From Paragordius varius (taxonomy: Eukaryota > Animalia > Nematomorpha): a DNA stretch of 64,000 nt. The stretch is taken from assembly GCA_964247055.1 (NCBI GenBank), contig OZ176057.1:2232001-2296000 (forward strand), read 5' to 3'. Below are positions 4,957 through 37,098 of this stretch, piece after piece. Under the pieces are notes generated by a model that saw only the letters and a program-made list of their open reading frames with translations, was not told where the DNA came from and made no database searches. How positions within the stretch are numbered: the stretch's first letter is position 1; every line of letters starts with the position of its first letter. The position numbers and the translations under genes are program-made.

Positions 4957-6731
4957 TTAATGATAGGCCATAGCAATATATTTCTTAATTTTGTATTTTA
5001 ATTTTGATAAATATCCATCATTCTTATGATAATAATAAAAAATTGATTCTTTTAAAAATTTGGGGAGAGGGACGTATTCTATAAGATCATCAATAAAACC
5101 ATTGTATTTTGTTGTAGACGCAGTCAAATGGATCCCGGAATCTTTCCTTGGAGGACAAACGTAATCCAAAGCTTCTGATATGCGTTCCATGATCCAATTA
5201 GCATAACTGTTGGATGTTGCAGTCGTATGACTATTTTTAAATCCACTGGCATCAATTACATAATCTTTCGCACCTACAACGTAATGACCAACCCTATCTA
5301 AAAGAGCTTGGGCATCTTCAGCACTTGCTGTAGATAAGCGTCTGGCCGTTTCAACCAACATGTTGGAAACAAATGTCAAGTACTCTTTGCTATTGTAGTA
5401 CGCTTCTGAGGCAAAATTTTCTTTGCTACTTCCCGAATCAAGTAAATGGGAAAAATAGTCACTTGCCTGCCCCAATGAATCTCGAACCCCACCCAACACT
5501 TTTGCAACGTATTCGGAATTTTTTTCATCATGATTGTGATAACCAGTTAAAGAAGCAAGCTTTTCTGCAGCATCCTTGAATGTATTACTTGCACTCTGGT
5601 AAAAAGTTGATGGATGCCTATGTGCTAAATAATCTGGGTAAACAGCATCAATTAAACCATCTTTAATATCTCCCAAAGTATCGTATGCTTGTTGGGCAAA
5701 TGTTTTATCAGCTCGAATCCCACCTGGGTGCATAACATTAGCTAATTTATCTTTCATATGTTGATAATGTGTTTGGGAAGTGTGAAAATATCCATTCTTG
5801 TGATTATATGGAGATATGTACCCACGCAATCCAGTTAAGTATTGACCGGCTTGATCTATGATACTGTAGGAATCCTCAAGACCGGCATTAGCCAATTTTC
5901 TACCCGCTTCAGAAATCATGTTAGCCGTAGATTCAATGTAATCGCGTGTGTCATACAATGACTCAGATAATGAGACTTTTGCTCTTTCTTTTTCGTCCCG
6001 CATGACTTTCGCAAAATGTTCACTAACATCAGAGATTGAATCTCTCGCGCGATCAAGTATACCCTTCTTTTCTTCAAAGCTCACAGCCTTCGATAATTGA
6101 TCAGAGGCCCGTAAAATTGTATCTTTGGCTCGTCCAAAAAACGTTGTTTTATGATATGGGTAAAATTGCAGAACGAATTCTTCCAAATTGTTCCAGGCAG
6201 TACCAAATGCGTCCCCTATTCCAGACAATGATGATTTATGAGAGTGAGGTAAAAATGTATCTTTAACATTCTCAAAAAACGTAGGTTGTGTATTATAATT
6301 CTTCCCGTATTTTTTTAGCCCCAAAAGGTAATGAGTAACTTGGTCGACCAAAACTTTTCCATCTTCAGCAGCAGCGTTAGGGAGCTTTTGGGACGCTTCT
6401 TTAAGCATGGCAAGAGTGGCATCCAAATATGCTTGGCTATCATAATAAGATTTGTAAGCTTGATCGTTAATATGTTCTGAGATGTGCTGGGGAGCATGAC
6501 CAATTATTTTAGTACGTAGGTTATCAATTGTTTGTCGAATGTGCTGTTCCGATGAATCTGCGTTGGATTTCAAAAAGTGTCCGGTATCCTCAATAGCTTC
6601 CTTAACCCGTTCATAGTAATTTGGTGAATTAGGATATATAGCATCCATAATATTATCTTTCAAATGACTCATTTCGTATAGGGTCCGTTGATATAAAGTT
6701 TTGTTCGGTACCATCCATGGAAAGTGTTTAC
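4957..6731 (-). CDS. Exon 14 (terminal) of lactamase/His-rich repeat giant protein; 3 diverged repeat units
   Basis: 585-aa ORF; acceptor tttataAG|GT at 6733-6732 (phase 1) gives GKHFPW, paralogous to the GDHFPW starts of the upstream modules. Confidence 0.85.
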
Positions 6732-6862
6732 CTTATAAATTTTAAAAAATAAAAACTAATTTAAAAAATAAAAAAAGTCTTAAAAATCGAAAAGTTTCAA
6801 GGTAACATCCATATTTAAATCATATATAGAACACACAAAAAATAAGATCTATCAAAACTTAC

Positions 6863-8665
6863 TAAAATATTTTTCAATAGTTTCAGCATATGTGGGTTCG
6901 TGTTTATGTCCGACAATATAATCCTTGGCACCAATCATGTAATCTCCAACTTGCTCCAAAATGGCTTTAGTTTCGTCAGTGGTGGCGTGAGATAACTGTT
7001 TGGCAGCTTCCATCATCATGACCGCACTATGATCCAGATATGCTTTCGAGTCATAATAGCTATCACTGATAACTTGGCCCAATGAATTTCGATGCTTTTT
7101 ATGCTTTATGAGATCCTTCAAATAATCGCTCGAATCAATTATTGAAGATCGAGATTTTTTCACAATATCCTTGATTTCTGAGAGCGATGTAGCTTTAGCC
7201 AAATCATTAGCATGTCGAATCACAGCATCTCGAGCTTGTTCATAGTAGCCTGGTTGGTGGGGTTTAAGAGAATCGACGAATTGGAGAAAGTATGATTTCT
7301 GCCTTGGATGTATGACTCCAAGAACTGTCTGAGAAAGGCCATCAATGAGATGTTTGGAGTCGTCAACACCCTCTTGTCCAAGATGTTTGGCTGCATTTAT
7401 TATAGCGCTAGCTGTAGATTCGAGATAATCAGCTGATTGATAAAAGTTATCTGTGATAGAATGTGCCAAACTATGTTTATTATGAGGATCAAATACCTCT
7501 TTGAAATAATCACTTGCATCGATCAAACTATTTCTGGTATTGTCAAGAATATGCTTCATATCATGGTGCGATTTCGCACCTTGTAATGAATTAGCAGCTT
7601 TAATAAGGGTAGCGCGTGCATTATCATAAAATGATTTTCGATGATGCGGATAAATGACGTCAAGAATGTTATCCTTTGTATCTTCGAGATATCCAGTGGT
7701 TTTTTCCCATAAGGTTGGTTCATGCTTGATTAAAGACTGAAGAGAATCTGGAAGAGACTTAATGTAATCGACATCAAAATAATTATGTTTGGTTTTATGG
7801 AGATGAGGAACGAAAGCAGAAAGTCCCAATAGATAATTAACGCTTTGGTCTATTATATGATTAACGTCTTTATCTGCATTCTTGGTGAAATGTCTGGCTG
7901 CATCAAGCAACATTGTCGGGGTGTTTTCTAAATAATCTCGACTGTCATAATAAGCATCTGATATGCGCTCCGATAGGCTGGGATGATGGTGGGAATGAGA
8001 AATTATCTTCGTTAAATAATCATTAGAAGATGCTATACTCTTTCTTGCACGATCAAGAATGTGTTTTATATCGCTTTCTTTATTAGTTTTAGACAAATCG
8101 TGAACTGCCTGATTTAAAACTCGCTTAGCATTTTCGTAGTAACTAGGTGGGTGTGGTTTAAACATAGTATGAATATGACTTTCAATTGGTTCCAAGTAAT
8201 GCGTCAAATACTCGACAAGTGCCGATGCATCTTCGTTAGTAGCCTTAGGTAATCGATGAGCCGCGTCTAAAATAGTGGCTTTAGTAGCTTCAAGGTAGGC
8301 GGCAGGATTTTCTTTCAAAAGTTTACTTAATTGCTCAGTTAAAGATGGACTACTTGATTTAAAACCAGCGCTTAATATAGCATTTTTTAATGGCTGAATG
8401 TATTCATGCGCTAAACTTCTCGATTTACCACTATAAAGTTTATTGGCAGTTGATAAAATTGCAGCTAAAGCTATATTATTGTAACCGTGATGCCCTGATT
8501 CACCCCATAATGTGTTCCAAGCTGATTTCAACATACTTGGTTTTTCCGTTGTAAATGGGATATGATCGCTAATCCATTGTTTTGCTTCCTTTGTTTCCGG
8601 AATATAATCAACGGTTCGTTCATATAGGGATTTTTGTCGTGAAGTAAGCCATGGAAAATGATCAC
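6863..8665 (-). CDS. Exon 13, repeat module C (1803 nt, phase 1-1)
   Basis: Open frame; acceptor ttttAG at 8667-8666, donor GTAAGT at 6862; ~95% identical to 12596-14395. Confidence 0.9.
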
Positions 8666-8879
8666 CTAAAACAAATGTATAAAAGTGTTAATAATATAAT
8701 AATTATACATGTAACAATTAAGCAAATCTGTTGTAAAAATAAAATTAGACAATGTTCCAAATATGTGGAGCTAATTTTTTAATGTGTAAAATCAGTCAAT
8801 CATCAATAAAATGCTTTGTTTGGTATAATAGAAAATCAGACTTATTACTACCAAGTTTTGATTAAAAATAGTTTCATGC

Positions 8880-10300
8880 AATTACGTATGTGAGACTGTC
8901 GATTATTATCGGTTTCAAGTATCATGATGAAATTTCATTGTCATACGATCAATATCATTAAAATAAAATTAATCCTTTTTGAGTTATTAGGGACTTTTTA
9001 GTGTTTGACTCTGATTAAAGATGGATATATATTAGTAACATATCTAAAGAGCTAGGGAACAAGGTTTGTGGGTTAGAAATAGTAAACTACATAGAAATGC
9101 ATGGTAAAAGATAGTAGAATAGTAGAAATAGCAAAAGAAATTTGGAGAACTTGTAAAGCATTGATAAAAATAAATTATAAAGTCGAGTTTATAAATTATA
9201 TTTGGTTAAAAAAATGCAGAAAATGTAAAATAAAAAAACCAAAATGGGATTTAATAAGGTTTATAAAGAACTAGGCAAAGATAAAGGAGGTGTTTGTATG
9301 TGTCAAGGTAAGCAAACGTGACAACGGCAAAACTATTTATTGGCAAAAATATGATATTTAACTTATAGAAATAATACGAGTTTAGTGAAGGATGCGAATT
9401 TACCAATTCTCACTCAAAGCAACAACAACCATATCAATTGACTTTTATATCTATTTGAAATGTTTTTGATACAATGCTAGAAAGGGAATTTGGTGTTGCT
9501 AAAAAAGGAAAGGGGGTAGAAGATTATATTTGGTTGCGATCCATATAATGAACATTTAATCAAAGTAAAGATCAGGTTTTCGATGATTTTAAATTAAGAA
9601 ACAAGCTACAACTCTTACACCATTATTCTGCTCATTTGTATCAATGTGATTTCTGGTTGGTAAGGAACGTTTTTTTATTCTGATGATCTTATTCATTTTT
9701 CTGAAAGTTTACTATTTAAACCAAATGTTAACAACTGGTTAAAAGGTTATCCAATTGTGAGTTTAGATAAACAATAGGAAAATTGAGTTTGTAGCTTTAA
9801 CATGTATTGAACGAATTTTAAATTTATGAGGAGAGAATCGGATTAAAATTATTAAAACTTGAGCGCAGTGTGCGCTGATGACAGCTGATATATATAAAAT
9901 TAAGTGTAGCTAACAAATAAAAAATGTTTAAAATAGGTTGTAGGGTGAAGCTTATGAGAGGTATGATTAAGCTGGCATTGAAATAAATATCGAAAGAGTT
10001 ATTGTGGTAGCGGAGATGGCATTTAGGCTGATGAGTGGACGAGCAAGGATAAAGTTAATTATAATGCAGTTAAAAAGTTTGTATGAAATTGGGGATAAGA
10101 GAGGGAGATGATATTATAAAGAAAGATTTAAAAAAATGGAATTCAGAAGAGTGAATATAAGGACAATTTAGGATAAATTTGGAGTGATGGTATGCTACAA
10201 ATTTATTATACTTATATTAAATAAATATTTTTTTCAAAGATGTATTAAACGGTGGAGAGCAAAAAATGTTCATGAATCATATATCATTCAATAGTTAAAA
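8880..10300 (+). mobile_element. Highly degenerate non-LTR (LINE) reverse transcriptase remnant in intron
   Basis: Fragmented motifs in RT order: IDF..K(C)FDT (~9437-9470), FNMY (9796), (C)ADD (9871-9882); many stops. Confidence 0.45.
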
Positions 10301-10405
10301 GCAGAATAATGAATATCGAATGGTGAATGCGGTTGAAAAACTCGATTTTTTTTTTAATTTTGGATATTACCTCAACAAAAATAAGCATTTTTATCGCACG
10401 TCAAG

Positions 10406-11002
10406 TATACCGTTTGCACTTCAAGGTCCTTGAACACTTCAAGTTGGTCCTTGAACGTTTCAAGTTGGTCTTTGAACATTTCAAGTTGGTCCTTGAACAC
10501 TTCAGGTTGGTCCTTTGACTTTTTTGTTTTGTTTTTAACTTTTATCAATCAAATCGTTATTTTATTGTTTTTTAACCTATTTTCTATTATTTAACATAAA
10601 TTTTAAATCGATATCAACTTTTAATCTTTAGGAAACCGTATATCCTTATTAATTTCTTAAAATAATTTTGGATATTTTTAAGATTTAACACGAACTGAAA
10701 AAATATATAAGTTTTCTGGGTTATTAATTAAAATTTTTTATTAAAAACATTTAAAAGTCAATAATTTTGTTCAATTGAAAAAAAATAGTTTAAAACAAAA
10801 AAAATGGTTTTTCAATAAAATTTTTTATTTATAAATGCAAAAATTATGGTTAAATAAAGAATTAGGTTAATAAATAATAAAATTAAAAAATAAATGCAAA
10901 AATTATGGTTAAATCAAAATTTATAAATTTTAAGAACCAACTTGAATCGTTCAAGGACCAACTTGAATTGTTCAAGGACACTCTTGAAGTGCAAATGGTA
11001 TA
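10406..11002. mobile_element. MITE, TACC(A/G)TTT terminus, 21-bp subterminal repeats (ttcaagttggtccttgaacac)
   Basis: TIRs tataccgtttgcacttcaag / cttgaagtgcaaatggtata; TA at both ends; related decayed copy at ~52565-53070. Confidence 0.8.
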
Positions 11003-12595
11003 GATACAAGAGAAGAAAACGCGTCTGCAAGCAGTTTAAAAATTCTAAATTTTATCAAAGATTATATAAATCAAAGCTAATCGCACTTTGGCGATCTATA
11101 TAAAAACTTATTATGGCAAAATATAATAATTTTTATTAAAGAAATTAAGCTGAAATGCGTACAAATATAAAAAATATATATTTTAATTTTCGACTTTTAT
11201 AGTAAAGTCTTTATCGAAAAAATCTCAATTTTAATATAATAATTTTTTTGTCATATATTTACTATATATTTTTGGACTTTAATTTGCTTCAAGCCTTAAA
11301 CATTTTAAGTTGGTCCTTGAAAACTTTTATTTTATTTTTAACATTATAATCAAACCTTGTATTACTAATGCATCCTATCATTATTTAATGAGTATCATTT
11401 TTCCCGAAAACCTATATTTATTTATTTTTTGCAAATATTTTATCGAAAAATTTTTACGCGTAATTTATTAAATTTTAAGTATAGTATAAATTGCATTGTT
11501 AATAACAAGGTTATATTGTTAATGTGCAAATACTATAAATAAAGATATTAAGTTAAAATAAAAAAACAATTACATACAAAAGTAAGGCTGCAAACAAACT
11601 CAAAACTTAAGGACTAGCCTTACCTGAAGGACCAACTCGAAGTGTTTAAGGACAATTTTATGGTATACACATTATTAACGAAAAACAGGAAGACGACATA
11701 TTCAAAAATTTATCCGCATTTTTCCAAATTAGCTATCGAGAGAAAGTATAAAAATTTATTACTTAATTTGTGCCAGAGTTCAAAGCCCGAAACTACGCAA
11801 TTTTTCTATCATCACTGTCAGCCCTGGGCAGGCGAGTGTTAAGGGCTTCACAAGTCCGGATACAATTTAAGTCTCTACCCTTTAATAAAAAAAGAAAAAA
11901 GAGACTCCAAACTGTAAATTTTTTTGAAATTTTACGTTCCAATTAGCAATCACCATATATTTTATAATAAAGCTTGGGTTGTTATAAATTTGATGGATGT
12001 TACGTGTATTCTTGGTTTAAAAGTAAACCATTTATTAAACGGTGAATTCAATATGTTTTAGTGCGTCCACAAAAATATATCCTGATGATATATAAATATT
12101 TTGATAAGAAAATGTATCTTGAGTATCATGGTGCTTTTGGCCTTTACGAATCAAAAGAAGTTATCTGCACTTTGTGGCAATGCTCCATATCAAAAAATGG
12201 CAAAATCTGCGCACATTTTAACTAAATTTCGAATTCTAGATAAGTGTGTTCAACACGCGGTCCTTTAAATATTTGCGGTCTGAGAATAATTAATACAAAA
12301 TCTTATGAAATCTAAGAAAAAAAATTTCTTAGACAAATTTTCTGAGATTTTTTTTTGAATTTTGGCAATGAACCAGAAAAAATGTTAAAAGATAGTTGTT
12401 GCTTACGTTTAAAATCCAATTAAATATTTGTTAATACCCATAAATTATCCAAATGCGGTCCGCAAAACCATTTATGCTGTACACCTCTTTTCTGGAGTTA
12501 GCAAATGACATGACTCTAATTTGCGAAATTTTTCATAACAATTAATTTGAAAATCAAATAAAATATTAAATAACCATAATTGGATTTAAATTTAC

Positions 12596-14395
12596 CAAAA
12601 TATTTTTCAATGGTCTCAGCATATGTGGGTTCGTGTTTATGTCCGACAATATAATCCTTAGCACCAATCATGTAATCTCCAACTTGATCCAAAATGGCTT
12701 TAGTTTCGTCAGCGGTGGCGTGAGATAACTGTTTGGCAGCTTCCATTAACATGACCGCACTATGATCCAAATATGCTTTTGAGTCATAATAGCTATCACT
12801 GATAACTTGGCCCAATGAATTTCGATGCTTTTTATGCTTTATGAGATCCTTCAAATAATCGCTCGAATCAATTATTGAAGATCGAGATTTTTTCACAATA
12901 TCCTTGATTTCTGGGAGCGATGTAGCTTTAGCCAAATCATTAGCATGTCGAATCACAGCATCTCGAGCTTGTTCATAGTAGGGTTGGTGGGGTTTAAGAG
13001 AATCGACGAATTGGAGAAAGTATGATTTCTGCCTTGGATGTATGACTCCAAGAACTGTCTGAGAAAGGCCATCAATGAGATGTTTGGAGTCGTCAACACC
13101 CTCTTGTCCAAGATGTTTGGCTGCATTTACTATAGTGCTAGCTGTAGATTCGAGATAATCAGCTGATTGATAAAAGTTATCTGTGATAGAAAGTGCCAAA
13201 CTATGTTTATTATGAGGATCAAATACCTCTTTGAAATAATCACTTGCATCAATCAAACTTTTTCTGGTATTGTCAAGAATATGTTTCATTTCGTGGTGCG
13301 ATTTCGCACCTTGTAATGAATTACCAGCTTTAATAAGGGTAGCACGTGCATTATCGTAAAATGATTTTCGATGATGCGGATAAATGACGTCAAGAATGTT
13401 ATCCTTTGTATCTTCGAGATATCCAGTGGTCTTTTCCCATAAGGTTGGTTCATGCTTAATTAAAGATCGAAGAGAATCTGGAAGAGACTTAATGTAATCG
13501 ACATCAAAATAATTATGTTTGGTTTTATGGAGATGAGGAACGAAAGCAGAAAGTCCCAATAGATAATTAACGCTTTGGTCTATTATATGATTAACGTCTT
13601 TATCTGCATTCTTGGTGAAATGTCTGGCTGCATCAAGCAACATTGTCGGGGTGTTTTCTAAATAATCTCGACTGTCATAATAAGCATCCGATATGCGCTC
13701 CGATAGGCTGGGATGATGGTGGGAATGAGAAATTACCTTCGTTAAATAATCATTAGAAGATGCTATACTCTTTCTTGCACGATCAAGAATGTGTTTTATA
13801 TCGCTTTCTTTATTAGTTTTAGACAAATCATGAACTGCCTGATTTAAAACTCGCTTAGCATTTTCGTAGTAACTAGGTGGGTGTGGTTTAAACATAGTAT
13901 GAATATGACTTTCAATTGGTTCCAAGTAATGCGTCAAATACTCGACAAGTGCTGATGCATCTTGGTTAGTGGCCTTAGGTAATCGATGAGCCGCATCTAA
14001 AATAGTGGCTTTAGTAGCTTCAAGATAGGCGGCAGGATTTTCTTTCAAAAGTTTACCTAATTGCTCAGTTAAAGATGGACGACTTGGTTTAAAACCAGCG
14101 CTTAAGATAGCATTTTTTAATGGCTGAATGTATTCATGCGTTAAACTTCTCGATTTACCACTATAAAGTTTATTAGCAGTTGATAAAATTGCAGCTAAAG
14201 CTATATTATTGTAACCGTGATGCCCTGATTCACCCCATAAAGTGTTCCAAGCTGATTTCAACATACTTGGCTTTTCCGTTGTAAATGGAATATGATCACT
14301 AATCCATTGTTTTGCTTCCTTTGTTTCCGGAATATAATCAACGGTTCGTTCATATAGGGATTTTTGTAGTGGAGTAAGCCATGGAAAATGATCAC
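12596..14395 (-). CDS. Exon 12, repeat module B (1800 nt, phase 1-1)
   Basis: 633-aa ORF; acceptor attAG at 14397-14396, donor GTAAAT at 12595; lacks one codon (QPYY vs QPGYY) relative to modules A and C. Confidence 0.9.
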
Positions 14396-15699
14396 CTAAT
14401 ATGAATTGAATATGCATAAATAAAAATATATATTAATAATCCATGTTTAAATAATATTTGAAATTTTATTTATTAAAAATATAAAAAATATAGCTAATTT
14501 TTCAATTAAAATACACATAATTTATTTAAGGTAAATTTGAATTGTTTGAGGTGAATTCGAATTGTTCAAGGGTCAATACGAATCGTTCAATGAATTCGAA
14601 GTGTAAATGGTATCAATACGGATTTAATAAAAGACTCTTTAAAGAAAACATACTCTGTATTTTATTATTAAATTGCTTGTATATACATAAAATTTTTATC
14701 CAAGGTGCTTTTAATAAAAAAAAGATAAGATTTTTCCTAATTAAATATAAGGCATATATATTTGTGAAAATAAGGTCAAGGGAAAAATTGCTCGACAAGG
14801 AATCCCAAAAAGTTTAAAGAAACAACTTTGAGACATATACCAAAGTTAGCACGTATAATTAAGTTGGATAACATGAATGCGAAATTGGATTGAAAGATAA
14901 AAAAAAGCGCAAAGAGAATATTGAGTAGGTTTTATAAGCACAATTCAGATAACAAATTCGTCCATATCTCTAAATAGGATTCATAATTTGGATAAACTTT
15001 GGGTTTCGATTGTAATAATTAAATATAACCGGCTCTTAACAAACAAAGGATCAGGAATTGTTGATTGTCTACTAGGAATGTTATTTAACTTTAACTAAAA
15101 ATGACAGAACATTACAATAATTGATCAAATAATAAATCCATTTTATGAATTTATATAATGTTATAAGATGAATGAATCCAATTTTAAAAATTACCAAGCT
15201 AGAAGCCAAAACGGAGCAAGGGATCTATATAAACCTGATAGTAGAGAATACGTATGAAACAGATAATGGAGTAACAACTCATTTATGCTTACTAAATATT
15301 GATGATATGACGAAAGAAACTGTGCACTTAGACTAATACCAATTAAGGCAGTTTATAACCAAGATTGGAATATACAAGTGGCAGGATCGCTATTAGAAAA
15401 GAAAAATAGCGTATCTACAATACTTGGTTTGATCTTCAAACAAATTACAAATCTTAGCAGATGAAAAATTATTTAAAAGAGGACAATATACCCAGTGCAA
15501 ACAATAAAATATCGAGAAATTTAGAATTCATATGACGCACACAAAAAGAACCTTTTATGCTAAAGAGTCGACCCCATATCGAAAAATCACAATATTGGCT
15601 CTTATTTATATAATAACGTTTAATTCTAAAAGTTTTATATAAAATAAATAAAAGAACCCGAATTATCTGCATAAGAGCTCCAAAATTTGGAATATTTTC

Positions 15700-16237
15700 A
15701 AAAAACGTCCACTCAAGTATAAGAATTCAAAATAAAACAGTACAAATTTTTTATACACGACACCAGATGTCAAAAAAAGAAAACAAAAAACAATATTTTT
15801 GGTTTCATTTTGATATAGAAGTTATTTTCCAGAATAAAATATGAATTTTAAGATTTTAATAGTAAATGGTAGTAAAGAATTAAAAAAAAACTAATTTAAT
15901 ATAATTTCATTAAATTTTTTTGTCTTTTAAGTGTGATAAAAGAAAAACGCCATCTTTTGAACCTGAAATTTTATAGAAACCCTAACTATATGATTTTAGG
16001 CTATTTATATATTGAAAATATCTCCTAAGATAATAAACGATAATATTTCAGATTTTATCATTATTTTTTGAATTATCCTTAATTATGCATAATTTTCACT
16101 TTTTGCCCGATTTCGATTTTCTCTCAATATTTCAAAAACTAGGTTGTCAACAAATAAAAATTTGCGGCAAATGAATACGCTGGTCTTAAGCTATCTCATG
16201 AAAAAAAATTTCGTTAAAAATATTTTTGCACACAGTA
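15700..16237. mobile_element. One arm of long-TIR element, homologous to ~45850-46332
   Basis: Shared blocks ccctaactatatgattttaggctattt, gcggcaaatgaat.cgctggtc and end tttttgcacacagTA. Confidence 0.65.
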
Positions 16238-16580
16238 TATATACGATTGCACAATCGACGAATTATTATGAATTCCAAAAATGATTAAAACGCTGGAGCC
16301 TCCCAATTACGTTTAATATGTTTAAAAATGCTTTATAATGCGATTATAAATTTTAGCATTGTGTAGAAAATAATAATAAAACATTTTAAAACAGTTGGAA
16401 ATTTTTATGACCCCAGTGAAAATATATAAACTTGAATACCGATTGGTCCCTTTAGGCTTAAGTTTTATTATTTGAAAAATACTTTGGCAAATAACATCTA
16501 ATGAAAGTGATGATAAAATGATGACTTAATATCTTTTAATATTATAAATATTTAAATCAAGTTAACATAGTAATAATTAC

Positions 16581-19500
16581 CAAAATATTTTTCAATAGTT
16601 TCAGCATATGTGGGTTCGTGTTTATGTCCGACAATATAATCCTTGGCACCAATCAGGTAATCTCCAACTTGCTCCAAAATGGCTTTAGTTTCGTCAGTTG
16701 TGGCGTGAGATAACTGTCTGGCAGCTTCCATCAACATGACCGCACTATGATCCAGATATGCTTTCGAGTCATAATAGCTATCACTGATAACTTGACCCAA
16801 TGAATTTCGATGCTTTTTATGTTTTATGAGATCTTTCAAATAATCGCTCGAATCAATTATTGAAGATCGAGATTTTTTCACGATATCCTTGATTTCTGGG
16901 AGCGATGTAGCTTTAGCCAAATCATTAGCATGTCGAATCACAGCATCTCGAGCTTGTTCATAGTAGCCTGGTTGGTGGGGTTTAAGAGAATCGACGAATT
17001 GGAGAAAGTATGATTTCTGCCTTGGATGTATGACTCCAAGAACTGTCTGAGAAAGGCCATCAATGAGATGTTTGGAGTCGTCAACACCCTCTTGTCCAAG
17101 ATGTTTGGCTGCATTTACTATAGTGCTAGCTGTAGATTCGAGATAATCAGCTGATTGATAAAAGTTATCTGTGATCGAATGTGCCAAACTATGTTTATTA
17201 TGAGGATCAAATACCTCTTTAAAATAATCACTTGCATCGATCAAACTTTTTCTGGTATTGTCAAGAATATGTTTCATTTCGTGGTGCGATTTCGCACCTT
17301 GTAATGAATTACCAGCTTTAATAAGGGTAGCGCGTGCATTATCGTAAAATGATTTTCGATGATGCGGATAAATGACGTCAAGAATGTTATCCTTTGTATC
17401 TTCGAGATATCCAGTGGTCTTTTCCCATAAGGTTGGTTCATGCTTGATTAAAGATCGAATAGAATCTGGAAGAGACTTAATGTAATCCACATCAAAATAA
17501 TTATGTTTGGTTTTATGGAGATGAGGAACGAAAGCAGAAAGTCCCAATAGATAATTAACGCTTTGATCTATTATCTGATTAACGTCTTTATCTGCATTCT
17601 TGGTGAAATGTCTGGCTGCATCAAGCAACATTGTTGGAGTGTTTTCCAAATAATCTTTGCTATCATAGTATGCATCTGTGATGCGCTTAGATAGAGTGGG
17701 ATGATGATGGGCATGAGAAATTACTTTTGTTAGATAATCGCTGGAGGAAGTTATGCCTTTTCTGGCTCGATTTAGAATGCTTCTTATATCGCTTTCTTCG
17801 TGGACATTTGATAAATCATGTACAGTTTTTGCTAAAACTTCTTTGGCATTATCGTAATATGTTGGTTTATGAGAATGAAATATACCCTGAACATCATCTT
17901 CAATTGGTTCTAAATAATGTGTTATATATGTAACAAGGGTGGATATATCTTCATTCGTAGCTTTAGGTAGTTTATGGGCAGCATCTAATATGGTTGCCTT
18001 TGTCGCTTCAAGATAAGCCGCAGGATTTTGATGAAATAGCTCAGCTAATTGTTTAGTAACAATAGTATTGGATGATGTTAAGCCGGCTTTTGCCAATGCT
18101 CTCCTCAAAGGCTTAATATAGCGTGAGAAATCGCTGCTACCTTTACCTTTGTACAATTCATTAGCTGTTGACAATATTGCAGCTAGTGCCATGTCACTAT
18201 TTATTCCGTGAGAATTTGATTCTCCCCAAATTGTATTCCAAGCAGATTTTAATATGCTTGGTTTTTCAGTTGCGAAAAACTGCAAGTGATCATTTACCCA
18301 TTCCTTACTTTGGGAAAGAGTTGGTATATTAGATTTCTCATGATATCCTATTATATTGGAAAAATAGCCATGTTGTTTATGATGTATATGTGGCAGATAT
18401 TGTTTGACGCCAACAATATATTTACCCACTGTGTCCAATATATTACGCATATCATCATGACTTGCTTTAGCTAGAGCTTTGTTAGCCTCGTTCAACATCT
18501 CCCATGTGGACTCTAAATATTCCTGGCTATTATAATATGATTTAGAAATACTTTTTGACGCATCTTTTAACAAATCGCTGTGAGACACAATCACATCCCG
18601 AGCTTGTTTATATGCGTCCCGTACATCATCAGATGTAGGACTCTTGTCCTTTAGTGTATGAGCCATGTTGGAAACTAAGCGTGCAACTTGATCACTGTAA
18701 CTATCTTTGTGAGGCCAAAGAGATTCATGAGCCAGGTGACCAATATGTTCAAAAAAACTTTCTTTGTGCATGCCAGGAATGTATTTTATTAGGCCTGACG
18801 CATAATCAAAAACTTGATTGACTAAATTTTGAATGTCGCTAGAGCCCGCGTCTGATAATCGTTTACCCGCTTCAACTAGCATAGAAGCTGTATTTTCGAC
18901 ATAATCTTTAGTATCAAAATAGGCATGTTCACTTTTTTCAAGTAAAGCTTTTTGGATATTTTTAAGCTTTTTGATTGTCTCTTGATCCGCATTATGTTTG
19001 CTATTGTGATGGAGAATTTCGTCAATATTGGTAACTAATGATTTCCGATATAAATTAATTATTTTATTTAAATCTGACCCAGATTTGGCATTAGTTATTT
19101 CATGAGCAACTTGCTTTATCTGATCGGTAAGAGAATGGGGAATGGTGATTGAGGCTTGATGCTTAACATTAGATATTATGTCATCAAACATCCCTGAGCC
19201 CCCTTTGAGATTAAATTGTGGTAAATGACTTTGGTGATAAGGTATAAGGCCGGTCAAATAATGGGCTAAACTATTTACTAATGCCGAGACTTGATCATGT
19301 TTCAAACTACTTCCTTTTTTACCATATCCTAGTTTGTGACTAGCTTCAATTATGGCATTTGCTGTTGTGTGTAGGTATTCAGGCGATAACAAATATTCAT
19401 CATGTTTTCCATGTAAACTTTTTGCCTTGTGTAATAAAGCCTTAAGAGTTGGTTCATGGCTAAAAGTGTCCCTGAGTCGTTTAATAGTATTTTGTAGCTT

Positions 19501-19832
19501 TTCTTTATCAGCATGTGATAGAGCTGATATATCTTTTGAAGCTAATTTATGACTAAAATCTTTTAGATCATGTGATGCCGTTTCAATCAGGTGTATGAGA
19601 GAAGGGGTAGCATGAATAAATGATTCATCGGAGATGCTATGTCTTTTTTGAGTTACGTCATGATGAATATCTTCGTATCCATCTATGGTACGCGTCAATG
19701 TTGATAAAGATGGAAATCTACGTATACCCATTATGTATTCAAACGCTAGAGCTATTAAGGGGACGACATGCGTTGGATGGTGAGATAAATCTGAAATTTG
19801 TTTGCCCACAGAATGTGTTAACTCTGTCACAC
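16581..19832 (-). CDS. Exon 11 (3252 nt, phase 1-1): 3 diverged repeat units plus module A
   Basis: 1107-aa ORF; acceptor tctAG at 19834-19833, donor GTAATT at 16580. Confidence 0.9.
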
Positions 19833-20115
19833 CTAGATTGGCAAAGACAAAATAAATATTAATTATATGATACAATAGAATTCTACTCTTATAATCCTAA
19901 TAAAATGCTTATTTTAGCTAATGAGTATCCGTTTCAATTTTCAACAGTCTTTATAAATATATTCGTACAAGGCTGAATGCATCTATAGTTATTAGCCCAA
20001 TTAAAATTTAAATTATAAAATATTTACTACTCAATCAAAATTTTATTTTATTTGTTTAAGATCAGATTATGAGAGTAAATAGGTAGGGAATATGCCAGTT
20101 AAAATTTAACACTAC

Positions 20116-20675: not shown

Positions 20676-20747
20676 CTAAAAAACAAAATAAATTTTTAAT
20701 TTTTGTCATTTTTTTCATTTTCTTAAAAAAAATTGGATGTCTATTAC

Positions 20748-21481: not shown

Positions 21482-21603
21482 ATAAGGATTTGGTATTAAA
21501 ATGAATCCAGTTGCCATACCGAAATTGTACATGTCCCCAAAAATGGCATCAATTTCACAAGGGGATGAAGTTTCTTTAACCATGTATTCAAGCAGTTCTG
21601 GTT
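21482..21603 (-). CDS. Exon 8, beta-lactamase-like
   Basis: (K)PELLEYMVKETSSPCEIDAIFGDMYNFGMATGFILIPNPY; AG acceptor and GTGAGT donor, phases 1/0 consistent with neighbours. Confidence 0.82.
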
Positions 21604-22370
21604 CTATACAATGTCATATAATTAAATTATAGAATTATTTTTTACATAAAAACACCTATATAATTAAATGATTAAAACGAAATGCGTATTTAAATAAGGA
21701 ATGAACAATTTCTCTCAAAAATTCCGTTTAATAAATAAAATGTATTAAATCTTTATTATTAATACATATACTCTGATTATAAAGTCACTGAAAATTTTAA
21801 GATAGATGTTTTTATAGAAGATTAGAATTTGCAACTAAATATTAGTATAAATTTTGTGGTTATTAATGAAAAGACTATATAAAGTTAATTTATAGAACTT
21901 ACCTTAATAACATGTAGTTTTTGATGAATGTCACTTGGAACAAACAATCGAATGTTTTATAAATATGTCTTAGTATAAAATGGTTGAAATTGCTTATTAT
22001 AAATATTTTCAATCTTAAAACTTATTTCCTTTCGTAGAAAAAGTAGTTTAATATAAAAACTATAATCCTGTTTTGTAAACTCTGTACACCGCGTAATGAC
22101 ATTAAAAAACAATAAAAGTAAGTTTGACGAAAGCATTTCATTTAAGTGATGATCCTTAAATAAACGCAATTAGAATAACTTACCATATACTTTTGAAATT
22201 CAAAGGCTTGGCTACTCTCTGCAAAAGATTCGGTAAATATAGCCTAATTTTTGGAATTGTTAATAAATTTTCAACTATAAGTGACATGAATTTATTTTAG
22301 AATGGGGGTTTAAACAAAAAAACGCCTTTAACAAATATCAAAAAAGTAATAAAATTAAATTATATCTAAC

Positions 22371-22515
22371 TTATCAGAGTTTTATCGCCTTGGGGTGATG
22401 CCGCATTAGCTAAAATACCATACAATTTAGCTAAACTCCTGGCATCTCCGATCCCAATAACGCTAGGAAATTGTAGGGCACGAATTTCGGGTTTATTTAG
22501 AGCCATACTGTGGGA
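22371..22515 (-). CDS. Exon 7, beta-lactamase-like
   Basis: SHSMALNKPEIRALQFPSVIGIGDARSLAKLYGILAN resembles family N.PEvr.aeiPa.nGig.ARslAklYg.Lan; phases 0/1. Confidence 0.88.
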
Positions 22516-23684
22516 CTAATGTAATGGATAAAATATATATATATATATATTTGCACAATTTGCAAAAAGAATGGTAAAAAAAGACTTAAAATCTGGAAAT
22601 CTATCGATAAGTTATATATGTTTTTGATTAAAAATAACAAAAAATTATTATATTTATTTGAAAATATTATAATTATTGTTATATACGGGTAGAAATTCCC
22701 AAAATTGCAAAAATCTTACTTAGTTTATAAGGAGTTTTTATAATGTAATTTGTCGATTTTTTGTAATCAAAACCATATTTTCAGATTATTACTTTCCCTA
22801 TATAATTTATACAATGGGGTTAGTAGACCCAAACTCAATAATTAACAATACTCTAAACTTGGTTAGAAGTAAAATAATAAACGAAAACAGATTAAGTTAT
22901 ATAGCATATATGCATCTTACAGCAAATAACATTAATTTTAAAAAAATTAGTTTAAATACTACTAATATTAGGGCAAAATTTTTCGAATTCTACATATCAT
23001 TAAATAATGGGCCCCTTAAACGATACTTATAATTCAAATTTATGCATTTTATCAACCAATAAAACATTAAATGCCAAAAATTCAAATATATAATAAAATA
23101 TTAAATTCTTCATAAAACATATTTCCTGCTATTTTTCGTTATTTTAATTATGAAATCGGTATTTGACATATGCGATATTTTACAGTCCACAATATTGTTA
23201 AACAAATAATAGAGAAAAACTATGCAGAAAAAGTAAAAAGGTAAATAAAAAACAATTATAATATAATTTTTCTAATAAAAATGTTTTATCCGATACTTTT
23301 TACTTAGTCGTTTTAAAATCATTTTAGTTGTATCAGAGTTCAATATATAAGATATCACAATATTTCTAAGTCTTATATACTCCATGAAATCAAAACGTAT
23401 TAGGTTATAAAAAAGGTATAGAACAAATAGAAGGATGAAATATATTTTGATACATTGAAAAAACGGCTAATTTTAAAAGTGGAAATCAAATTATTCACGT
23501 TATATATATATTATTTAAAATACATTCTTTAGAGTACTTTCTGCCCAAGATTTAAATAAAAAAAAATCTTATATAAATATTAATCAAAAAACAATTATAA
23601 AATAATTTATTATAGAAAATTGAAAAATGAAACTAAAAGTGTGATTATTGTTTTATGAAAAAAAATTGACTATTTTGGACTTAC

Positions 23685-23863
23685 TTTGACTATGAAATCG
23701 GGGTTAGACATAGCCCGTTTAGTTGCATCGTTATGATAAACCATAAGTCCAAACTTAAGTTTTTGCCATAGGCCAGGTAAAGTTTTAAACATTCTTTCAT
23801 TCCGTAACGTTGCGACGCGACTGTTAAGATCCCGGGAACGAAGTCCAAAATAATAATCTAAAT
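23685..23863 (-). CDS. Exon 6, beta-lactamase-like
   Basis: DLDYYFGLRSRDLNSRVATL...AMSNPDFIVK; donor GTAAGT; phases 1/0. Confidence 0.85.
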
Positions 23864-24480
23864 CTATATTTGATTTGAGATAAATAGTGATAAAATAAGA
23901 GTTAAAAATAATCCTTTTATAAGGAAAATTATATAACTTTATTATTTCTATTTATTAAACCTATTTTGGGTTATAAAATTTATTAAAATTAATTTTTATT
24001 TCAAAAATTATATGATGTATTCAATATGAAACATGATTTAAAAATATAATTTTTTTCTAAAGTAAAAAATAAGTAATAAATTTTTTTGGAAAAACGTAAA
24101 TTTTAACTTTTTTTATATCGATACACCCCTATCGTTTTAAGTTGTAAAATGATAAACTCATTTTATATTATCTAAATTTTAATCAAATGAATTAATATCA
24201 CATATTGCTTAAGTATCTCTTTAATTTATTATAGAACACAAATGTAAAAATATTATCAATATTTAGCTTTTTTTAATGTTTCGAAAGAGTTTAAAAAAAT
24301 ACCAATTAATAATAAATCTTTTAGAGCTTTCATTAATTGATATTGAAAAATATAATAAATTATAACTGTAAAATCAAAAAATTTATATAAAAAAGTAGAA
24401 AATAAAAAACCTTAATTCGAAAAATAAATACATATTAATTTATATCACTTAACAAAGAATTGAAATTAAAAAATTATTAC

Positions 24481-24590
24481 CATATTTTTTGGCAATTTCA
24501 TCCTCGAAATATTTTGCAAGGGAACGATGTTTTGAATCGATTCTACGGATTAGTTGATCGACATATAAACCATAGGTGAAAACATGATAT
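24481..24590 (-). CDS. Exon 5, beta-lactamase-like (catalytic Tyr motif)
   Basis: GYHVFTYGLYVDQLIRRIDSKHRSLAKYFEDEIAKKY; phases 2/1. Confidence 0.9.
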
Positions 24591-25068
24591 CTAAATAATA
24601 ATTATAAATATTGATTTATTTTAAATACTAATTTCGCATTGATTATCCTACTATTTATTTAATAAATAAAACCAATTTTTCATAATTACAGGATATTTTT
24701 AAAATGTTGTTTAGGTCCATTTGAAATGAACAACATTTGATATATAATGATATTTTTTTAAAATGTTGTTTAGATATGTTCTTGATTCAAAATTTTATCG
24801 CTTTTATAAAAGAAATATTAAATATATTTAGAGTGGGTCAACGAAAGTGTTAATTTTAAAACTTTAAAATTTTATTTCTCTTAAAAATATATAATTATGA
24901 ATAGATATAAAAGAAAGTATTTCTCATATATGAACAATAATATAATATGTGAAAAAAAATAATTTCAATACAAAAAACAATACTTTTAATGATGCATAGT
25001 CATAATTAGATAATAAATAGGAGCTAATTTAAAAAATTCCAATATATTATATAATAAAAATATTAAAC

Positions 25069-25229
25069 CCTCTTCTTTGACCCGCTCCCCAGGCCGGTTT
25101 TTGAGCTGCCAATATTCGACTTAATTGATTATCGAGCGTTTTAACGTTATTTTTATCGGACCACAAACTATTTTCTTGTAACATTTTAACTGTTATACGG
25201 TTTGATTTATCAATGTATGGTATACCTGC
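25069..25229 (-). CDS. Exon 4, beta-lactamase-like
   Basis: AGIPYID...ILAAQKPAWGAGQRRG, completing LLTHR-AG; phases 0/2. Confidence 0.88.
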
Positions 25230-25230
25230 C

Positions 25231-25265
<35 letters not shown>

Positions 25266-25328
25266 CCAAACTAAAAATAATTTTTATTTAAACAAAAAAA
25301 CAATTTTTAAAGAAACTTTATCATTTTA

Positions 25329-25625
25329 TATACCATTTATAGTTCGAATTCACCCTCGAACAATTCAAATTCACCCTATTATTAGTTAAGATTAAAAATT
25401 ACATATGTTTTTTTATATTTTAAAAAATATGAAATTACGTTTAAAATTAATATACTACTGAAATAATAAACTATGCCATAAGAATATATTTCTTATTATT
25501 GATGAGTTATATTAGTTCTTCGAAAAGAAATAATATACTTTTAGGGTGAAATTGTTCTAGGGTGAATTTAAAATCGAGGGAAATTTAGAATCGTTCAAAG
25601 GTAAATTTGAATTGTAAATGGTATA
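25329..25625. mobile_element. MITE, TACCATTT family (aattcaccctcgaacaattc repeats)
   Basis: TIRs tataccattta / taaatggtata with 19-20-bp tandem subrepeats. Confidence 0.82.
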
Positions 25626-25901: not shown

Positions 25902-26151
25902 ATACCATTTACAATTAAAATTCACCCTTGAACAATTCAAATTTACCTTTGAGCAGTTCAAATTCACCCTGAAATAAATTATGTGTTTTTTAAAAATAAA
26001 ATAATACTGAAAAAATAATAAATTATTCCATAAAGATCTATTTCATAATAAAAAATTATATTAGTTTTGAAAACATAAAATAGTTTTTTTAGGGTAAAAG
26101 TGAATTGTTCAGGGGAAAATTTGAATTTGAATGTAAACTGTAAATGGTATA
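25902..26151. mobile_element. MITE, same family
   Basis: ataccatttaca ... tgtaaatggtata. Confidence 0.8.
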
Positions 26152-26192: not shown

Positions 26193-26526
26193 TACCATTT
26201 ACAGTTCAAATTCACCCTTGAACAAATCAAATTCACCCTCGAACAATTAAAATTCACCCTAATAATAAATTATGTGTTTTCGAACTAATATAACTCATTA
26301 TTAATATAAAATATATCTTTATGGCATAATTAATTATTTTTTTCAGTGTTATTTTAATTTAAAACAAAATTTTATTTTTTAAAAATATATTAAAATATAG
26401 GTAATTTTTAATCTTAAAAAACATGTTATTTATTTAAGTGTGAATTTGAATCGTTTAAGGGTGAATTTGAATTGTTTAAGGGTAAATTTGAATTGTTTAA
26501 GGGTGAATTTAAACTGTAAATGGTAT
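26193..26526. mobile_element. MITE, same family, flanked by 26-bp direct repeat
   Basis: taccatttacagttcaaattcaccc ... gggtgaatttaaactgtaaatggtat. Confidence 0.82.
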
Positions 26527-27504: not shown

Positions 27505-27817
27505 CCTGTGCGTAAGTAAATGTTCAATCGTTATATTTTCTTTGCCATCATGATATTTCCCAAATTCGGGCCACCATTTAGCTATGGGGTCCTGTAATTT
27601 AGCTCCTTGATCTTGATTTTGACTTATCAAATGAGCCAACGTTATTGTACTCACACCCTTTGCAATAGATAGCGTATTAACTAACGTATCTTCAAGCCAA
27701 AAATCACGGTTCCGTTCATCCGAATACCCCGCCCATAAATCTATAATGGGTCGACCACCCAGGTAAGCGGAAAAAGCTGCACCCCCTTGACTTTCAAGCC
27801 CACGCGCAAAGTTTTGT
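27505..27817 (-). CDS. Exon 3, beta-lactamase-like/serine hydrolase with SxxK
   Basis: GAAFSAYLGGRPIIDLWAGY...DTLVNTLSIAKG...DPIAKWWPEFG...GKENITIEHLLTHR, typical of the class C beta-lactamase-related/EstA esterase family. Confidence 0.93.
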
Positions 27818-27826
27818 CTATAGTTA

Positions 27827-28125
27827 TATACCATTTACAATTCAATTTCACCCTCGAACAATTCAAATTCACCCTCAAATAAAATATGTGTTTCTTTTTT
27901 AAGATTAAAAAATACCTATATTTTATATATTTTTTAAAAAATAAAAATTTTGTTTTAAATTAAATAATACTGAAAAAATAATAAACTATACCATAAACCT
28001 ATATATTTCATATTAATAATGAGTTATATTAGTTTGAAAACGCATAATTTATTTTTAGGGTGAATTTGGATGTTCAAAGGTGAATTTGAATTGTTCAAGG
28101 GTGAATTTGAACTGTAAATGGGATA
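27827..28125. mobile_element. MITE, same family, abutting exon 3 acceptor
   Basis: tataccatttacaattc ... gaactgtaaatgggata. Confidence 0.8.
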
Positions 28126-30230: not shown

Positions 30231-30298
30231 TTGAATGCCTCTCGCACACCTTCGAATCCTGGCTCCACATGGCCATGAATATCAAAATTATATGTTTT
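30231..30298 (-). CDS. Exon 2, beta-lactamase-like N-terminus
   Basis: KTYNFDIHGHVEPGFEGVREAFK| joins QNFARG in phase 2; resembles family G.V.PGFE.VreaF..NF. Confidence 0.85.
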
Positions 30299-31410
30299 CT
30301 ATAAATTAATTGGTTACAAATTTACTTCATAAAATTTTGGAATGTAAAAAAATAGAATTGCTGCTAATAGCACGGATATTGAGGTTATTAAAATTGTCAT
30401 TAATATTCATCCAATTTGTTTTAAATAAATAATTGTTTCGAGCTAAAATCTATCGTAAAAATGACTTTGCAATTTTATATTAGAAATCTGTTATACAGCT
30501 GAATTGAGCCTGCCAAATCTTATTTAGTTCCACAAAGATAATACTACCATATGATATAAAGTATTTTCTTAAATTCATTATGCTAACTAGAGTAAAGATG
30601 TTGGTAAGATGTGGAGATTAAAAAGATACAGTATATTTATTGTAGTCTAAACTATATAAATTTGCGGATATCTGAGTTTTAAGCAGATACAACTCTTAAA
30701 CTTTAAATTTTTTGCAGATGAAGAAATAAAATTTTATATTGAGTGGGCTTTGGTTATAAAACAACACTAAGAATAAATAATATATAAATATTGTCGTCGA
30801 AGACCTCATTACAAATTTATAATTTTGTATGCGATAAAATATTAGAGTATTTTTTACCCTAAACTTAAGTTAGTAAATAACCATTTGTTATAAAAGTTCT
30901 TTTGGGTAAAATTAAAGAACGTTCCTCTGTAAATTTTAAAATTAATATGGATAGCTTAATAGCAGGATAGAAAACAACAGTTGATATAAAAATCAATTAA
31001 TTTTTTCCAGTAAATAGCATAGAAATATTTTTAAATTTAATTATTTACATTTTTAAATATAATTTATTTGCCTGTACCATTAGGGAAAAAAATTAAGAAA
31101 AAAAGGTGGTAAAAAGTTCATTTATTAATTTTTTGTGAAACTTCCCCAAAAGATCATGAAGTAATATGCATTGAACAGCGACAATTATTTAAACTATTAT
31201 AAACTGCGTCCGAATTCGGGGTGAAAAAATTATTATGATGAAATATTTATAATTTGATATGAAAATGGATCGGAATAATTATGGCTTTTGATTTTAGGCC
31301 CTTATGAGTGATATAAGAATTTTTACAATTTGGTGTTAGATAGTTCATATCACAAAATGACAAAATTTGCGCATATGCCAATTATTTTTTGCTGAAAGCT
31401 TAATATTTAA

Positions 31411-34636: not shown

Positions 34637-36876
34637 CAGTGGTACTCACCAAAAAAATTTGACGGGCCAAATAAAATTTAATTTTTTTTCGAGGGCCATG
34701 AACCTTATAATGGCAAAAATATCATAGCTATTTGACCTATATGCACACATTTATACTTTAAATCAGCAAAATGAATTTTTGGGGGATCGTATGCAAATCC
34801 AGCTAAAAACTCGTTTTGCACCATTTAGTAATTAAAATATTTTGAGAACAACATTTATTTTGAAAACAACATTTATTTTGATATTAACAAATAATTTTGG
34901 ACAAGCTTTCGCCTCATGACAGACCTAATACTTCGTCCATATGATCATCGGTTAAGCTATTTCTGTATGTATTCTTGACATACTTCATTTTTGAATATGT
35001 CGTCTCACACCTTTAAGTTGAGGGAAAATAGGATAACTTGACCACATTTTTTTAAATTGTCATATTTATTTGGCACATCTTGCCAAAATTCCGCATATCT
35101 TTCTTCTCTACGATTCTCCTTGAACATAGCCTCTAAAGTGGATTCATTTTTAAAATGTACGAATTCTTCAATGATATGCGTGCACCTGATCAAAACTGAA
35201 ATGCTCAAATTGCTTAATATTGGATATATCCATATGCCATGGATATTCAACGAGTTTTTTGCAATTTTTTATATTTCTTAATTCTTGAAATTTGATCTCA
35301 TTAGACAAAAATTTTATAATTGACTATTATTAAATTAATCTCCGCGGTAATTTCCATATTTTTTTCATGAATCGTTTTAAGTGTTGGAAAATATAGGAGT
35401 GTTTTATTTATAAAATCTTGTTTATACATTATTAATTTTTCCTCAAAAAATATTAGCGAATTTGGTTATTATTTTTCTCCGTTGAAGACTTGTATTAAAA
35501 ATTCTAAGTTTATAAGTAATGAAGGTAGGCTAAGAAAAACCCACCATTTGTCACTATTAATTTCCTCGTCAAACTATCTGTTATCTGTTATAAATAATAG
35601 AATTTCTTGTCTTGAAACAAATAATCTATTTAATACTTTGATAAGGCTTGGCATCATCATTCACTGAGGATATATTTCAGAAGGTTTTTAAATTTACGGC
35701 GGTTGAATTCTCTGCCACGGATGTGATTAACTATATCCACAACCGTTTTAATTACTTAATTGAGTGATTCATCTTTTACGCACGAAATCAAGTTTTGCTG
35801 CTAATATTCATTGGTAAAATTTCTAAATATTCCTCGTTGATTATGTTGTCGTTGGAATATCTCCGAAGAGCGCAGATTGAGTGGTTGAACTAATATTAGT
35901 GCTAGAATCAATAGCAATGCCAAAATATTTGCAGTTTTTCAGAGCTATTGTTAAGATAGATAAATCTTCGAGCACATATTGAATCAGAAAGGTAAAGTTT
36001 TTTTAATTTGCCTCATGATTTCTTAATTATAAAATTAATCTAAAAGGTGCAATCATTTATTAGACAATTTAGATGGGAATCAGTAAACGGATTCATATTT
36101 TTTTCTAAAATATATCAAATTTCATACGATGCAAATGTTACAGCTTTTTCCTGGGAGAAAGCTATAGACATAATAAATTTTTCTTTCTGGTATAATTCCT
36201 TAATCTTTTTATATTTTTCGCCTCATGATTTTCTGGTAATTTATAAAAATGATGGATTGTAAAATGACTTTCAATAATATATTAAGGCAGATAAAACAAC
36301 AAATAATTTGTCTTCCCATTAAAGGAACGATTTTCATCGGATAATTTACCTTTTTTTAGCATTAGATGTCATCCTTTGAATTTATGTTTAAATATTATGT
36401 AATTTTTTAAAAAAATAGGAGTATAATTTGAATTATGCTAAAAAACAGGTCGAAATTTGATGATGTTAATTTGAAAAATATTTTATGGGAATGAGTGATA
36501 AAAAATGATGCAGGATAGCAATGAAAAGAATATGTATAAGTTGGAAGGCTTGCTTAAATACAAAAAAGGAGGGCAATAAAAATTTCAAAATAGAAAAGAA
36601 AATAGAATACAGAAACAGAAACAACATAGGCTTAAATTTTGAAATCATTTTAATGTAGGGAAATGTTTCCACCTTTCAAATTGGGTAAAAAATAAATATT
36701 ACCAAAATATAATCCAAATAAAACAAATTGATATTAAAATAAGCAAATATTTATTTATGTTTATTTTAAAAATTCATCAATAAAAAAATAATTTAAGTAT
36801 CAATATGGTCATAGGGCAATTTTAAAGCACTCTTAGGGCCGCAGGCGGCCCGCGGGCCGCGGTTTGAGTATCACTG
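34637..36876 (-). mobile_element. hAT (Charlie/Buster-type) transposon with decayed GTF2IRD2-like transposase
   Basis: TIRs cagtggtactca / tgagtatcactg; perfect 8-bp TSD ctttatat (34629-34636, 36877-36884); minus-strand EFWQDVPNKYDNLKKC and SKMKYVKNTYRNSLTDDHM resemble the hAT dimerization domain. Confidence 0.9.
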
Positions 36877-37038
36877 CTTTATATTATCAGTTAAATATAC
36901 CTTGCTTTTATCCTCCAGTTTACAGAATTCAAAAATTAGCAATATTTTTAGTTGTGCCACTGTGATTTATAAGTCTACTAAGAGCAGACTTATGATGAAT
37001 GTATGATATTTATTCATAAGTAAACATATGTAGCATAC

Positions 37039-37098
37039 GGCCTTAAGCATAAGGACGTACACATAAAGCAAGGACGTAAGTATTACTAACTTAAACAT
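37039..37098 (-). CDS. Putative exon 1 (signal peptide) of lactamase/repeat gene
   Basis: ATG-MFKLVILTSLLYVYVLMLKA|GTATGC; hydrophobic core, phase 0 matches exon 2; 6.7-kb intron, so tentative. Confidence 0.5.

Follow-up and report, generated by a model that had tools for sequence, protein, structure and literature searches.

A hairworm gene predicted to join a carboxylesterase-like domain to a giant helical-repeat tail

We analysed a 64,000-nucleotide stretch of the genome of the hairworm Paragordius varius (contig OZ176057.1, positions 2,232,001 to 2,296,000), which we refer to as the window. Its minus strand carries a gene that, in our spliced model, runs through 14 exons from position 30400 to position 4957. 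The coding sequence of 10,545 nt contains no internal stop and specifies a protein of 3,514 amino acids with a predicted mass of ~399 kDa, in line with the single frame of ~10,530 nt and ~3,500 residues that had been proposed for this locus. An N-terminal hydrophobic segment is followed by an esterase-like domain and by a tail of 3,063 residues. The reading that we favour, and to which we give a probability of roughly 70%, is that one gene encodes a secretory esterase joined to a helical-repeat tail acting as a tether or scaffold.

Gene structure

The window is AT-rich, with a GC fraction of 0.20–0.37. Five long open frames at 4957–20686 specify a His- and Tyr-rich repetitive protein that is prone to form helices; the enzyme pieces lie upstream as short frames. 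We set exon boundaries with tblastn alignments of an ortholog from a second hairworm, Gordionus, as a guide, and all 13 introns of the resulting model have canonical GT–AG ends. Exon 1 (30326–30400) provides the start codon and an N-terminal hydrophobic segment, MTILITSISVLLAAILFFYIPKFYE, which may be a signal peptide or a signal anchor. It was located by tblastn with residues 1–25 of the Gordionus protein, of which 19 are identical. On this alignment we rejected the first exon at 37098 in favour of one at 30400; the gene start at 37098 in the original prediction thus finds no support, and the gene spans 4957–30400. A suspected hAT-transposase remnant at ~35000–35270 received no support from Pfam.

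Intron 1 (30299–30325) is 27 nt long, reads gtaaat...ttatag and contains two in-frame stops; its Gordionus counterpart measures ~156 nt. The enzyme domain starts in exon 2 (30231–30298) with HGHVEPGFEGVREAFK, and exon 3 (27505–27817) carries the catalytic S-I-A-K motif. Ortholog-guided exons 4 (25069–25229), 5 (24481–24590), 6 (23685–23863), 7 (22371–22515) and 8 (21482–21603) continue the domain, with exon 5 completing the G-Y-H motif of the catalytic tyrosine, which is split G/YH. Exon 9 (20748–20929), the last enzyme exon, encodes FGFPGHG...ALNQTPCGQ and ends in phase 2 at GG/GTAATAG. Across a 72-nt phase-2 intron (20676–20747) follows tail exon T1 (20116–20675), a linker region whose frame opens 20 nt above the acceptor. 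Exon T2 (16581–19832) encodes 1,084 residues of helical repeat units, T3 (12596–14395) a 600-residue module of ~4 helical units, T4 (6863–8665) a near copy of T3 with 97% amino acid identity, and T5 (4957–6731) the end of the protein including the stop codon, with an AATAAA just downstream. All four tail introns are in phase 1, as had been claimed, which makes T3 (1,800 nt) and T4 (1,803 nt) symmetric modules.

The C-terminal part of T2 (16582–18381) is 83% identical to T3 at the protein level. Given that T3 and T4 are both flanked by phase-1 introns, the copy number of the module could vary or have been mis-assembled. The introns also contain short arrays of a 21-nt satellite, ACAATTCAAATTCACCCTTGA, on both strands, at 25911–25970, 26206–26260, 26433–26517, 27837–27876, 28059–28115 and ~25313–25500. 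In a DNA sequencing run, X1, word depth at 25313–25500 reaches ~1.9 million against ~400 elsewhere, so that related sequence must be hugely abundant in the genome.

The enzyme domain

Exons 2–9 are predicted to encode a complete family VIII carboxylesterase, or serine beta-lactamase-fold, domain with its Ser, Lys and Tyr residues intact. The exon 3 piece bearing S-I-A-K (27834–27484) on its own matches Pfam family PF00144 (E = 1.6e-16; 60.9 bits, cut-off 27), the beta-lactamase family that had been suggested for a check, and it also matches the family VIII carboxylesterases 8j5v, 5gmx, 5gkv and 1ci8 in the PDB (E = 1e-15). Together, the nine exons of the ortholog-guided rebuild yield a 451-residue region with both SIAK and GYH, which bears out the complete beta-lactamase-like domain of the original prediction. 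The Gordionus ortholog carries PF00144 as well, and its domain aligns to residues 5–388 of the 398 residues of carboxylesterase 5gmx (E = 8e-39). The two hairworm domains are 62% identical.

At the catalytic S-x-x-K motif, where relatives have S-[AST]-T-K, the window reads SIAK and Gordionus SATK; all nine sequences of the alignment share G-Y-H. The third box of the family (K/H/W-x-G) is F-P-G in both hairworms and H-P-G, T-T-G or F-S-G in relatives, its position being variable across the family. The domain ends at the same alignment column in the window, in Gordionus and in free-standing relatives. Its two N-x-S/T sequons, N-I-T at residue 142 (exon 3) and N-Q-T at residue 445 (exon 9), align with the two of the Gordionus domain, N-I-T and N-A-S.

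Queries for our database searches were the Gordionus ortholog and single window exons rather than the whole spliced window protein. Among proteins of 258–822 residues, the range in which we looked for enzyme relatives and for a stand-alone enzyme, the best relative, at 39% identity, comes from a starfish (‘beta-lactamase domain-containing protein 2-like’); behind it rank proteins of annelids and bivalves and a large number from bacteria, all with a single domain. With these animal proteins and the family VIII enzymes (5gmx, 8j5v, EstA in 5gkv, EstB in 1ci8), the hairworm domain has in common a full-length fold match and the S-x-x-K and Tyr motifs; some of the animal proteins (those of Owenia and Asterias, for example) likewise begin with a hydrophobic segment. 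Unlike the hairworm protein, all PF00144 relatives found are single-domain proteins of 380–445 residues, as the original prediction had held for the family, and their third box is H/T/W-x-G rather than F-P-G.

The enzyme–tail junction

Exon 9 ends ...CAG GG/G TAA TAG, with an in-frame stop right behind the proposed donor. An unspliced frame that runs into a phase-2 donor GTAA, GTAG or GTGA reads NNG-TAA, NNG-TAG or NNG-TGA. The stop, which would follow the Gly codon directly if the intron were retained, is therefore automatic for a phase-2 GTAA donor and is not evidence against splicing. At 20675 there is a strong acceptor, tttattttgttttttag/G (ttttttag/G), which lies 72 nt downstream of exon 9 in matching phase 2, so the phase-2 junction from GG/GT to 20675 that had been read from this DNA is confirmed in the sequence. 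An acceptor at 20648, picked by a script, was rejected: it lacks a polypyrimidine tract, unlike the one at 20675. The 72-nt intron contains no in-frame start, and the tail frame has no ATG until 27 codons in.

The same arrangement is found in Gordionus, where the last enzyme exon ends GAA GG/GTAGTT, in phase 2 and likewise with an automatic stop. The tail begins ~3,055 nt later at ag/ATCTGTA, and two codons of open frame precede its acceptor. In both species, then, the tail frame opens at the acceptor with no start codon there, and the junction falls at an identical alignment position and in the same phase.

Sequencing run X1, which represents a second individual, differs from the window at three positions in exon 9, all three of them third codon positions; T1 is identical over 20130–20658, and the introns differ heavily. 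This pattern fits coding constraint on exon 9 and T1 and is silent on their joining. Over 19600–25500, the listed contigs of a low-depth run, X5 (organism B), show 0–2 differences each from the window, whereas X1 (organism A) departs from it at numerous intron sites; the individual behind the assembly may be the one that was sequenced, with a different label, in X5.

A fused ortholog in Gordionus

When 1.84 billion representative proteins were scanned in full by HMMER with a 1,092-residue tail exon as query, a single tail homologue emerged, P0001, of 3,750 residues. Its cluster contains the proteins XP_065319358.1 (isoform X1, 3,795 residues) and XP_065319359.1 (isoform X2) from RefSeq and CAK9299969-71 from the genome submitters, all from Gordionus sp. 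m RMFG-2023 (Nematomorpha). The gene is LOC135927324, annotated as an ‘uncharacterized protein’. The submitters' annotation was made with BRAKER and RNA-seq data, and the genome has a GC content of 26.9% (10.1101/2023.06.26.546503). This value resembles that of the window. Four isoforms from the submitters' and RefSeq annotation sets all cross the enzyme–tail junction and differ only in their starts (residues 1, 46, 125 and 375). Among Gordionus proteins of 258–822 residues we found no stand-alone enzyme. The two halves, whose linkage in a related genome had been proposed as a check, are thus linked in Gordionus within one gene model.

The Gordionus and window proteins have in common the N-terminal hydrophobic segment, the esterase domain, the phase-2 junction, ~20 helical units (~42% identical) and a near absence of Cys and sequons. 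They differ in that the Gordionus tail is a single exon after an intron of ~3 kb, whereas the window has five tail exons and a 72-nt intron, and unit types and linker sequences have diverged. The Gordionus tail, of 3,325 residues, occupies one exon of ~10 kb (locus L001, 39781–49758) and includes runs of eight 158-residue and seven 169-residue near-identical units.

Alternatively, the locus could hold two adjacent genes, an esterase that ends at the TAA after 20748 and a separate repeat protein, in which case the Gordionus fusions would be chimeric models. Such a reading would account for the stop codons right after the last enzyme exon (TAA in the window, TAG in Gordionus), for an enzyme domain that ends at the natural C-terminus of its family, and for the lack of RNA evidence in the runs and the protein collection that we searched. 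It is nonetheless unlikely. A stop is automatic behind GTAA and GTAG donors in phase 2, and the phases on either side of the junction agree in the window and in Gordionus alike. In neither species does the tail exon begin with a start codon; its acceptor in the window is strong, and a separate tail gene there would have only 72 nt for its promoter and first exon. The tail also avoids sequons, as described below, without having a signal of its own, and neither Gordionus annotation set contains a stand-alone enzyme. On these sequence comparisons, the enzyme and the tail very probably form one fused gene product common to two hairworm lineages.

A fusion is compatible with further products from the same locus: an enzyme-only form, in which the 72-nt intron is retained, and possibly an anchor-plus-tail form, in which exon 2 or exon 4 is spliced to T1. 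We regard such a set of products alongside the full fusion as possible. Intron retention would bring an immediate stop codon, the phase-2 ends of exons 2 and 4 match that of exon 9, and T3 and T4, being symmetric, could be skipped. The differing 5′ ends of the Gordionus models point the same way, but the shorter models may simply be 5′-incomplete.

The original prediction had described the architecture as one that it did not recognize. That description is fair, since outside Gordionus our searches found nothing related to the tail in sequence or in fold. The architecture is, however, already present in RefSeq as the unnamed Gordionus model. In the literature that we searched, the architecture is undescribed: we found no paper on this fusion and none on hairworms and beta-lactamases.

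Secretory route

In both species, no 19-mer anywhere in the protein is more hydrophobic than that at residues 2–20 (Kyte–Doolittle values of 2.46 and 2.60). A second trait is seen in the tails, which contain one N-x-S/T sequon in the window and none in Gordionus, compared to 19.7 ± 4.1 and 20.8 ± 4.3 expected from shuffles that preserve composition. Control patterns reach or exceed their expected counts: in the window and Gordionus tails, respectively, S/T-x-N occurs 19 and 35 times, N-x-x-S/T 19 and 20 times, and adjacent N-S/T 32 and 33 times, and D/Q/K-x-S/T behaves likewise. With near-duplicate units removed, the counts are 1 against 12.6 expected and 0 against 9.7 (P ~5e-5 each). The enzyme domain is not depleted of sequons.

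Oligosaccharyltransferase acts on N-x-S/T in the lumen of the endoplasmic reticulum (ER). The selective loss of sequons therefore points to a tail that travels through the ER. No signal is encoded in the tail itself, which leaves the hydrophobic segment from exon 1 as the only candidate. Taken together, the two traits suggest both a fusion and a secretory fate, while constant inclusion of the enzyme domain is not thereby proven. We consider it likely that the protein is secreted, as originally predicted; the support is indirect, consisting of the conserved N-terminal segment and the sequon loss in both tails, and the N-terminus would also fit an anchor that leaves the protein facing the cytosol.

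In that alternative, an ER-anchored protein with an N-terminal anchor like that of P450 enzymes would, for example, coat the lipid stores of the non-feeding adult. A hydrophobic segment from residue 2 onward with Lys residues behind it is consistent with such an anchor, as is a tail without disulfide-forming Cys. Specific depletion of sequons in both tails would be unexpected for a cytosolic protein, which makes a cytosol-facing protein very unlikely.

The repeat tail

The tail closely matches the ~3,060 His/Tyr-rich residues that had been proposed: its 3,063 residues (~348 kDa; isoelectric point 6.8) comprise 6.6% His, 5.8% Tyr and 0.1% Cys, equivalent to two cysteines. It is built from units of 128–170 residues around a [YF][YF]xSKxYL core, which marks 13 units in the window and 20 in Gordionus; with degenerate units included, the window tail has ~18–20. 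AlphaFold predicted one unit, given a 19-sequence alignment, as a confident helical bundle (predicted local distance difference test score, pLDDT, 83.7; predicted template modelling score 0.77) and a 599-residue module as four bundles joined by low-confidence linkers rich in His, Tyr and Pro (pLDDT 58). The modelled tail is thus a series of small helical bundles on flexible His/Tyr/Pro-rich linkers, like beads on a string.

Searches with the unit fold (PDB by Foldseek, AFDB clusters, ESM Atlas, VIA wide) returned generic helical matches only. Comparing the unit profile with the PDB, and all units with Pfam, gave only noise and designed bundles, and the best score of a feature-atlas search on the tail (0.62) was meaningless. 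In the Pfam comparison, no profile of exchangeable apolipoproteins (ApoLp-III, ApoA/E) or of HSP12/LEA-like proteins passed its cut-off; the best of them, ApoLp-III (19 bits; cut-off 36.3) and HSP9_HSP12 (24.7 bits; cut-off 26.3), remained below threshold. Talin rods and apolipophorin-III, which consist of a string of, or a single, four- to five-helix bundle, give weak sub-threshold matches to the tail, and their similarity to the hairworm unit, with TM-scores of ≤0.4 and Z-scores of ≤5.5, is no better than that of generic helical matches.

The recurrence of ApoLp-III and HSP12 among these matches raises the possibility that the tail is a polyprotein of small lipid-binding units. Nematode polyprotein allergens (NPAs; ABA-1 type), from the sister phylum, are secreted tandem arrays of small helical units, and by analogy the units would carry fatty acids or retinol, which the esterase would release. 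Tandem helical units of 128–170 residues in a secretory precursor would suit this role, and some units start with dibasic pairs (PHKR, PHKK or HHRK). Most unit types lack dibasic sites, and we found no regular basic cleavage site between tail units. All matches to lipid proteins fall below their cut-offs, and we detected neither a Pfam NPA match nor a sequence or fold match to ABA-1 in the PDB. The likeness to NPAs is one of architecture only, and NPAs have no enzyme domain. We consider a lipid-binding polyprotein improbable.

Discussion

Several points weigh against a single secretory fusion protein with a scaffolding tail. The in-frame TAA behind exon 9 makes an enzyme-only product possible. 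The Gordionus fusion is a set of gene models, and gene predictors can fuse neighbouring genes. Our sequencing runs gave no spliced contigs over 19600–25500, the RNA-labelled runs X6 and X7 being without this gene and X1 and X5 being DNA, and the protein collection that we searched contained no transcript-derived fragment across the Gordionus junction. The modelled intron 1, at 27 nt, is far shorter than is usual for spliceosomal introns in animals. The N-terminal segment lacks a positively charged n-region and has its Lys residues behind it, which also fits a cytosol-facing anchor. Finally, what we propose for the tail is purely inferred. The fusion as originally predicted is thus supported by comparison rather than by transcripts: Gordionus fusion models have the same junction phase and position, and no stand-alone enzyme was found among Gordionus proteins of 258–822 residues.

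In the reading that we favour, exon 1 would supply the hydrophobic signal or anchor for entry into the secretory pathway, and the phase-2 splice at GG/GT would join the esterase, exactly at its natural C-terminus, to the 3,063-residue tail. We infer the use of this splice and, equally, a luminal or extracellular location of the tail. The tail could then act as a long modular tether, or as a scaffold that forms a matrix, and keep the esterase within an extracellular material or at the worm's surface. The esterase domain would sit on a non-glycosylated, Cys-free chain of helical bundles, and the His and Tyr residues of the linkers may allow assembly that depends on pH, metals or dityrosine formation.

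A more specific version, which is speculative and in our view doubtful, is that hairworms, whose gut does not function, evolved an ‘enzyme on a spring’ that is extracellular and specific to their phylum, with an active esterase on ~20 unfoldable bundles whose linkers assemble or cross-link via pH, metals or dityrosine in a surface coat, a cuticle layer, or the matrix of egg strings or cysts. The same speculation extends to an array for harvesting host lipids, in which the esterase would free lipids for the units to bind. The original prediction had put forward glue, egg string, cuticle, a lipid-carrying particle and self-processing as possible roles. A known secreted esterase with a repeat tail is vertebrate carboxyl ester lipase (CEL), which ends in a C-terminal variable-number tandem repeat. 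CEL has a different hydrolase fold and a short, disordered, O-glycosylated tail rich in Pro; the hairworm tail, at ~3,000 residues, is predicted to be helical.

Lineage-specific repeat proteins are common, which tempers the interest of an orphan repeat as such. What sets this gene apart is that an enzyme family found only as single-domain proteins of ~400 residues is here joined, at its exact C-terminus, to an orphan helical repeat, and that two divergent hairworm lineages have retained the predicted fusion. To our knowledge, there is hardly any molecular work on Nematomorpha, and our literature searches brought up no secreted material from hairworms. The tail unit would represent a new helical domain family for structural study. 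A conserved giant secretory protein that is free of sequons and Cys would be a candidate component of the cuticle, of egg-string or cyst material, or of the host–parasite interface.

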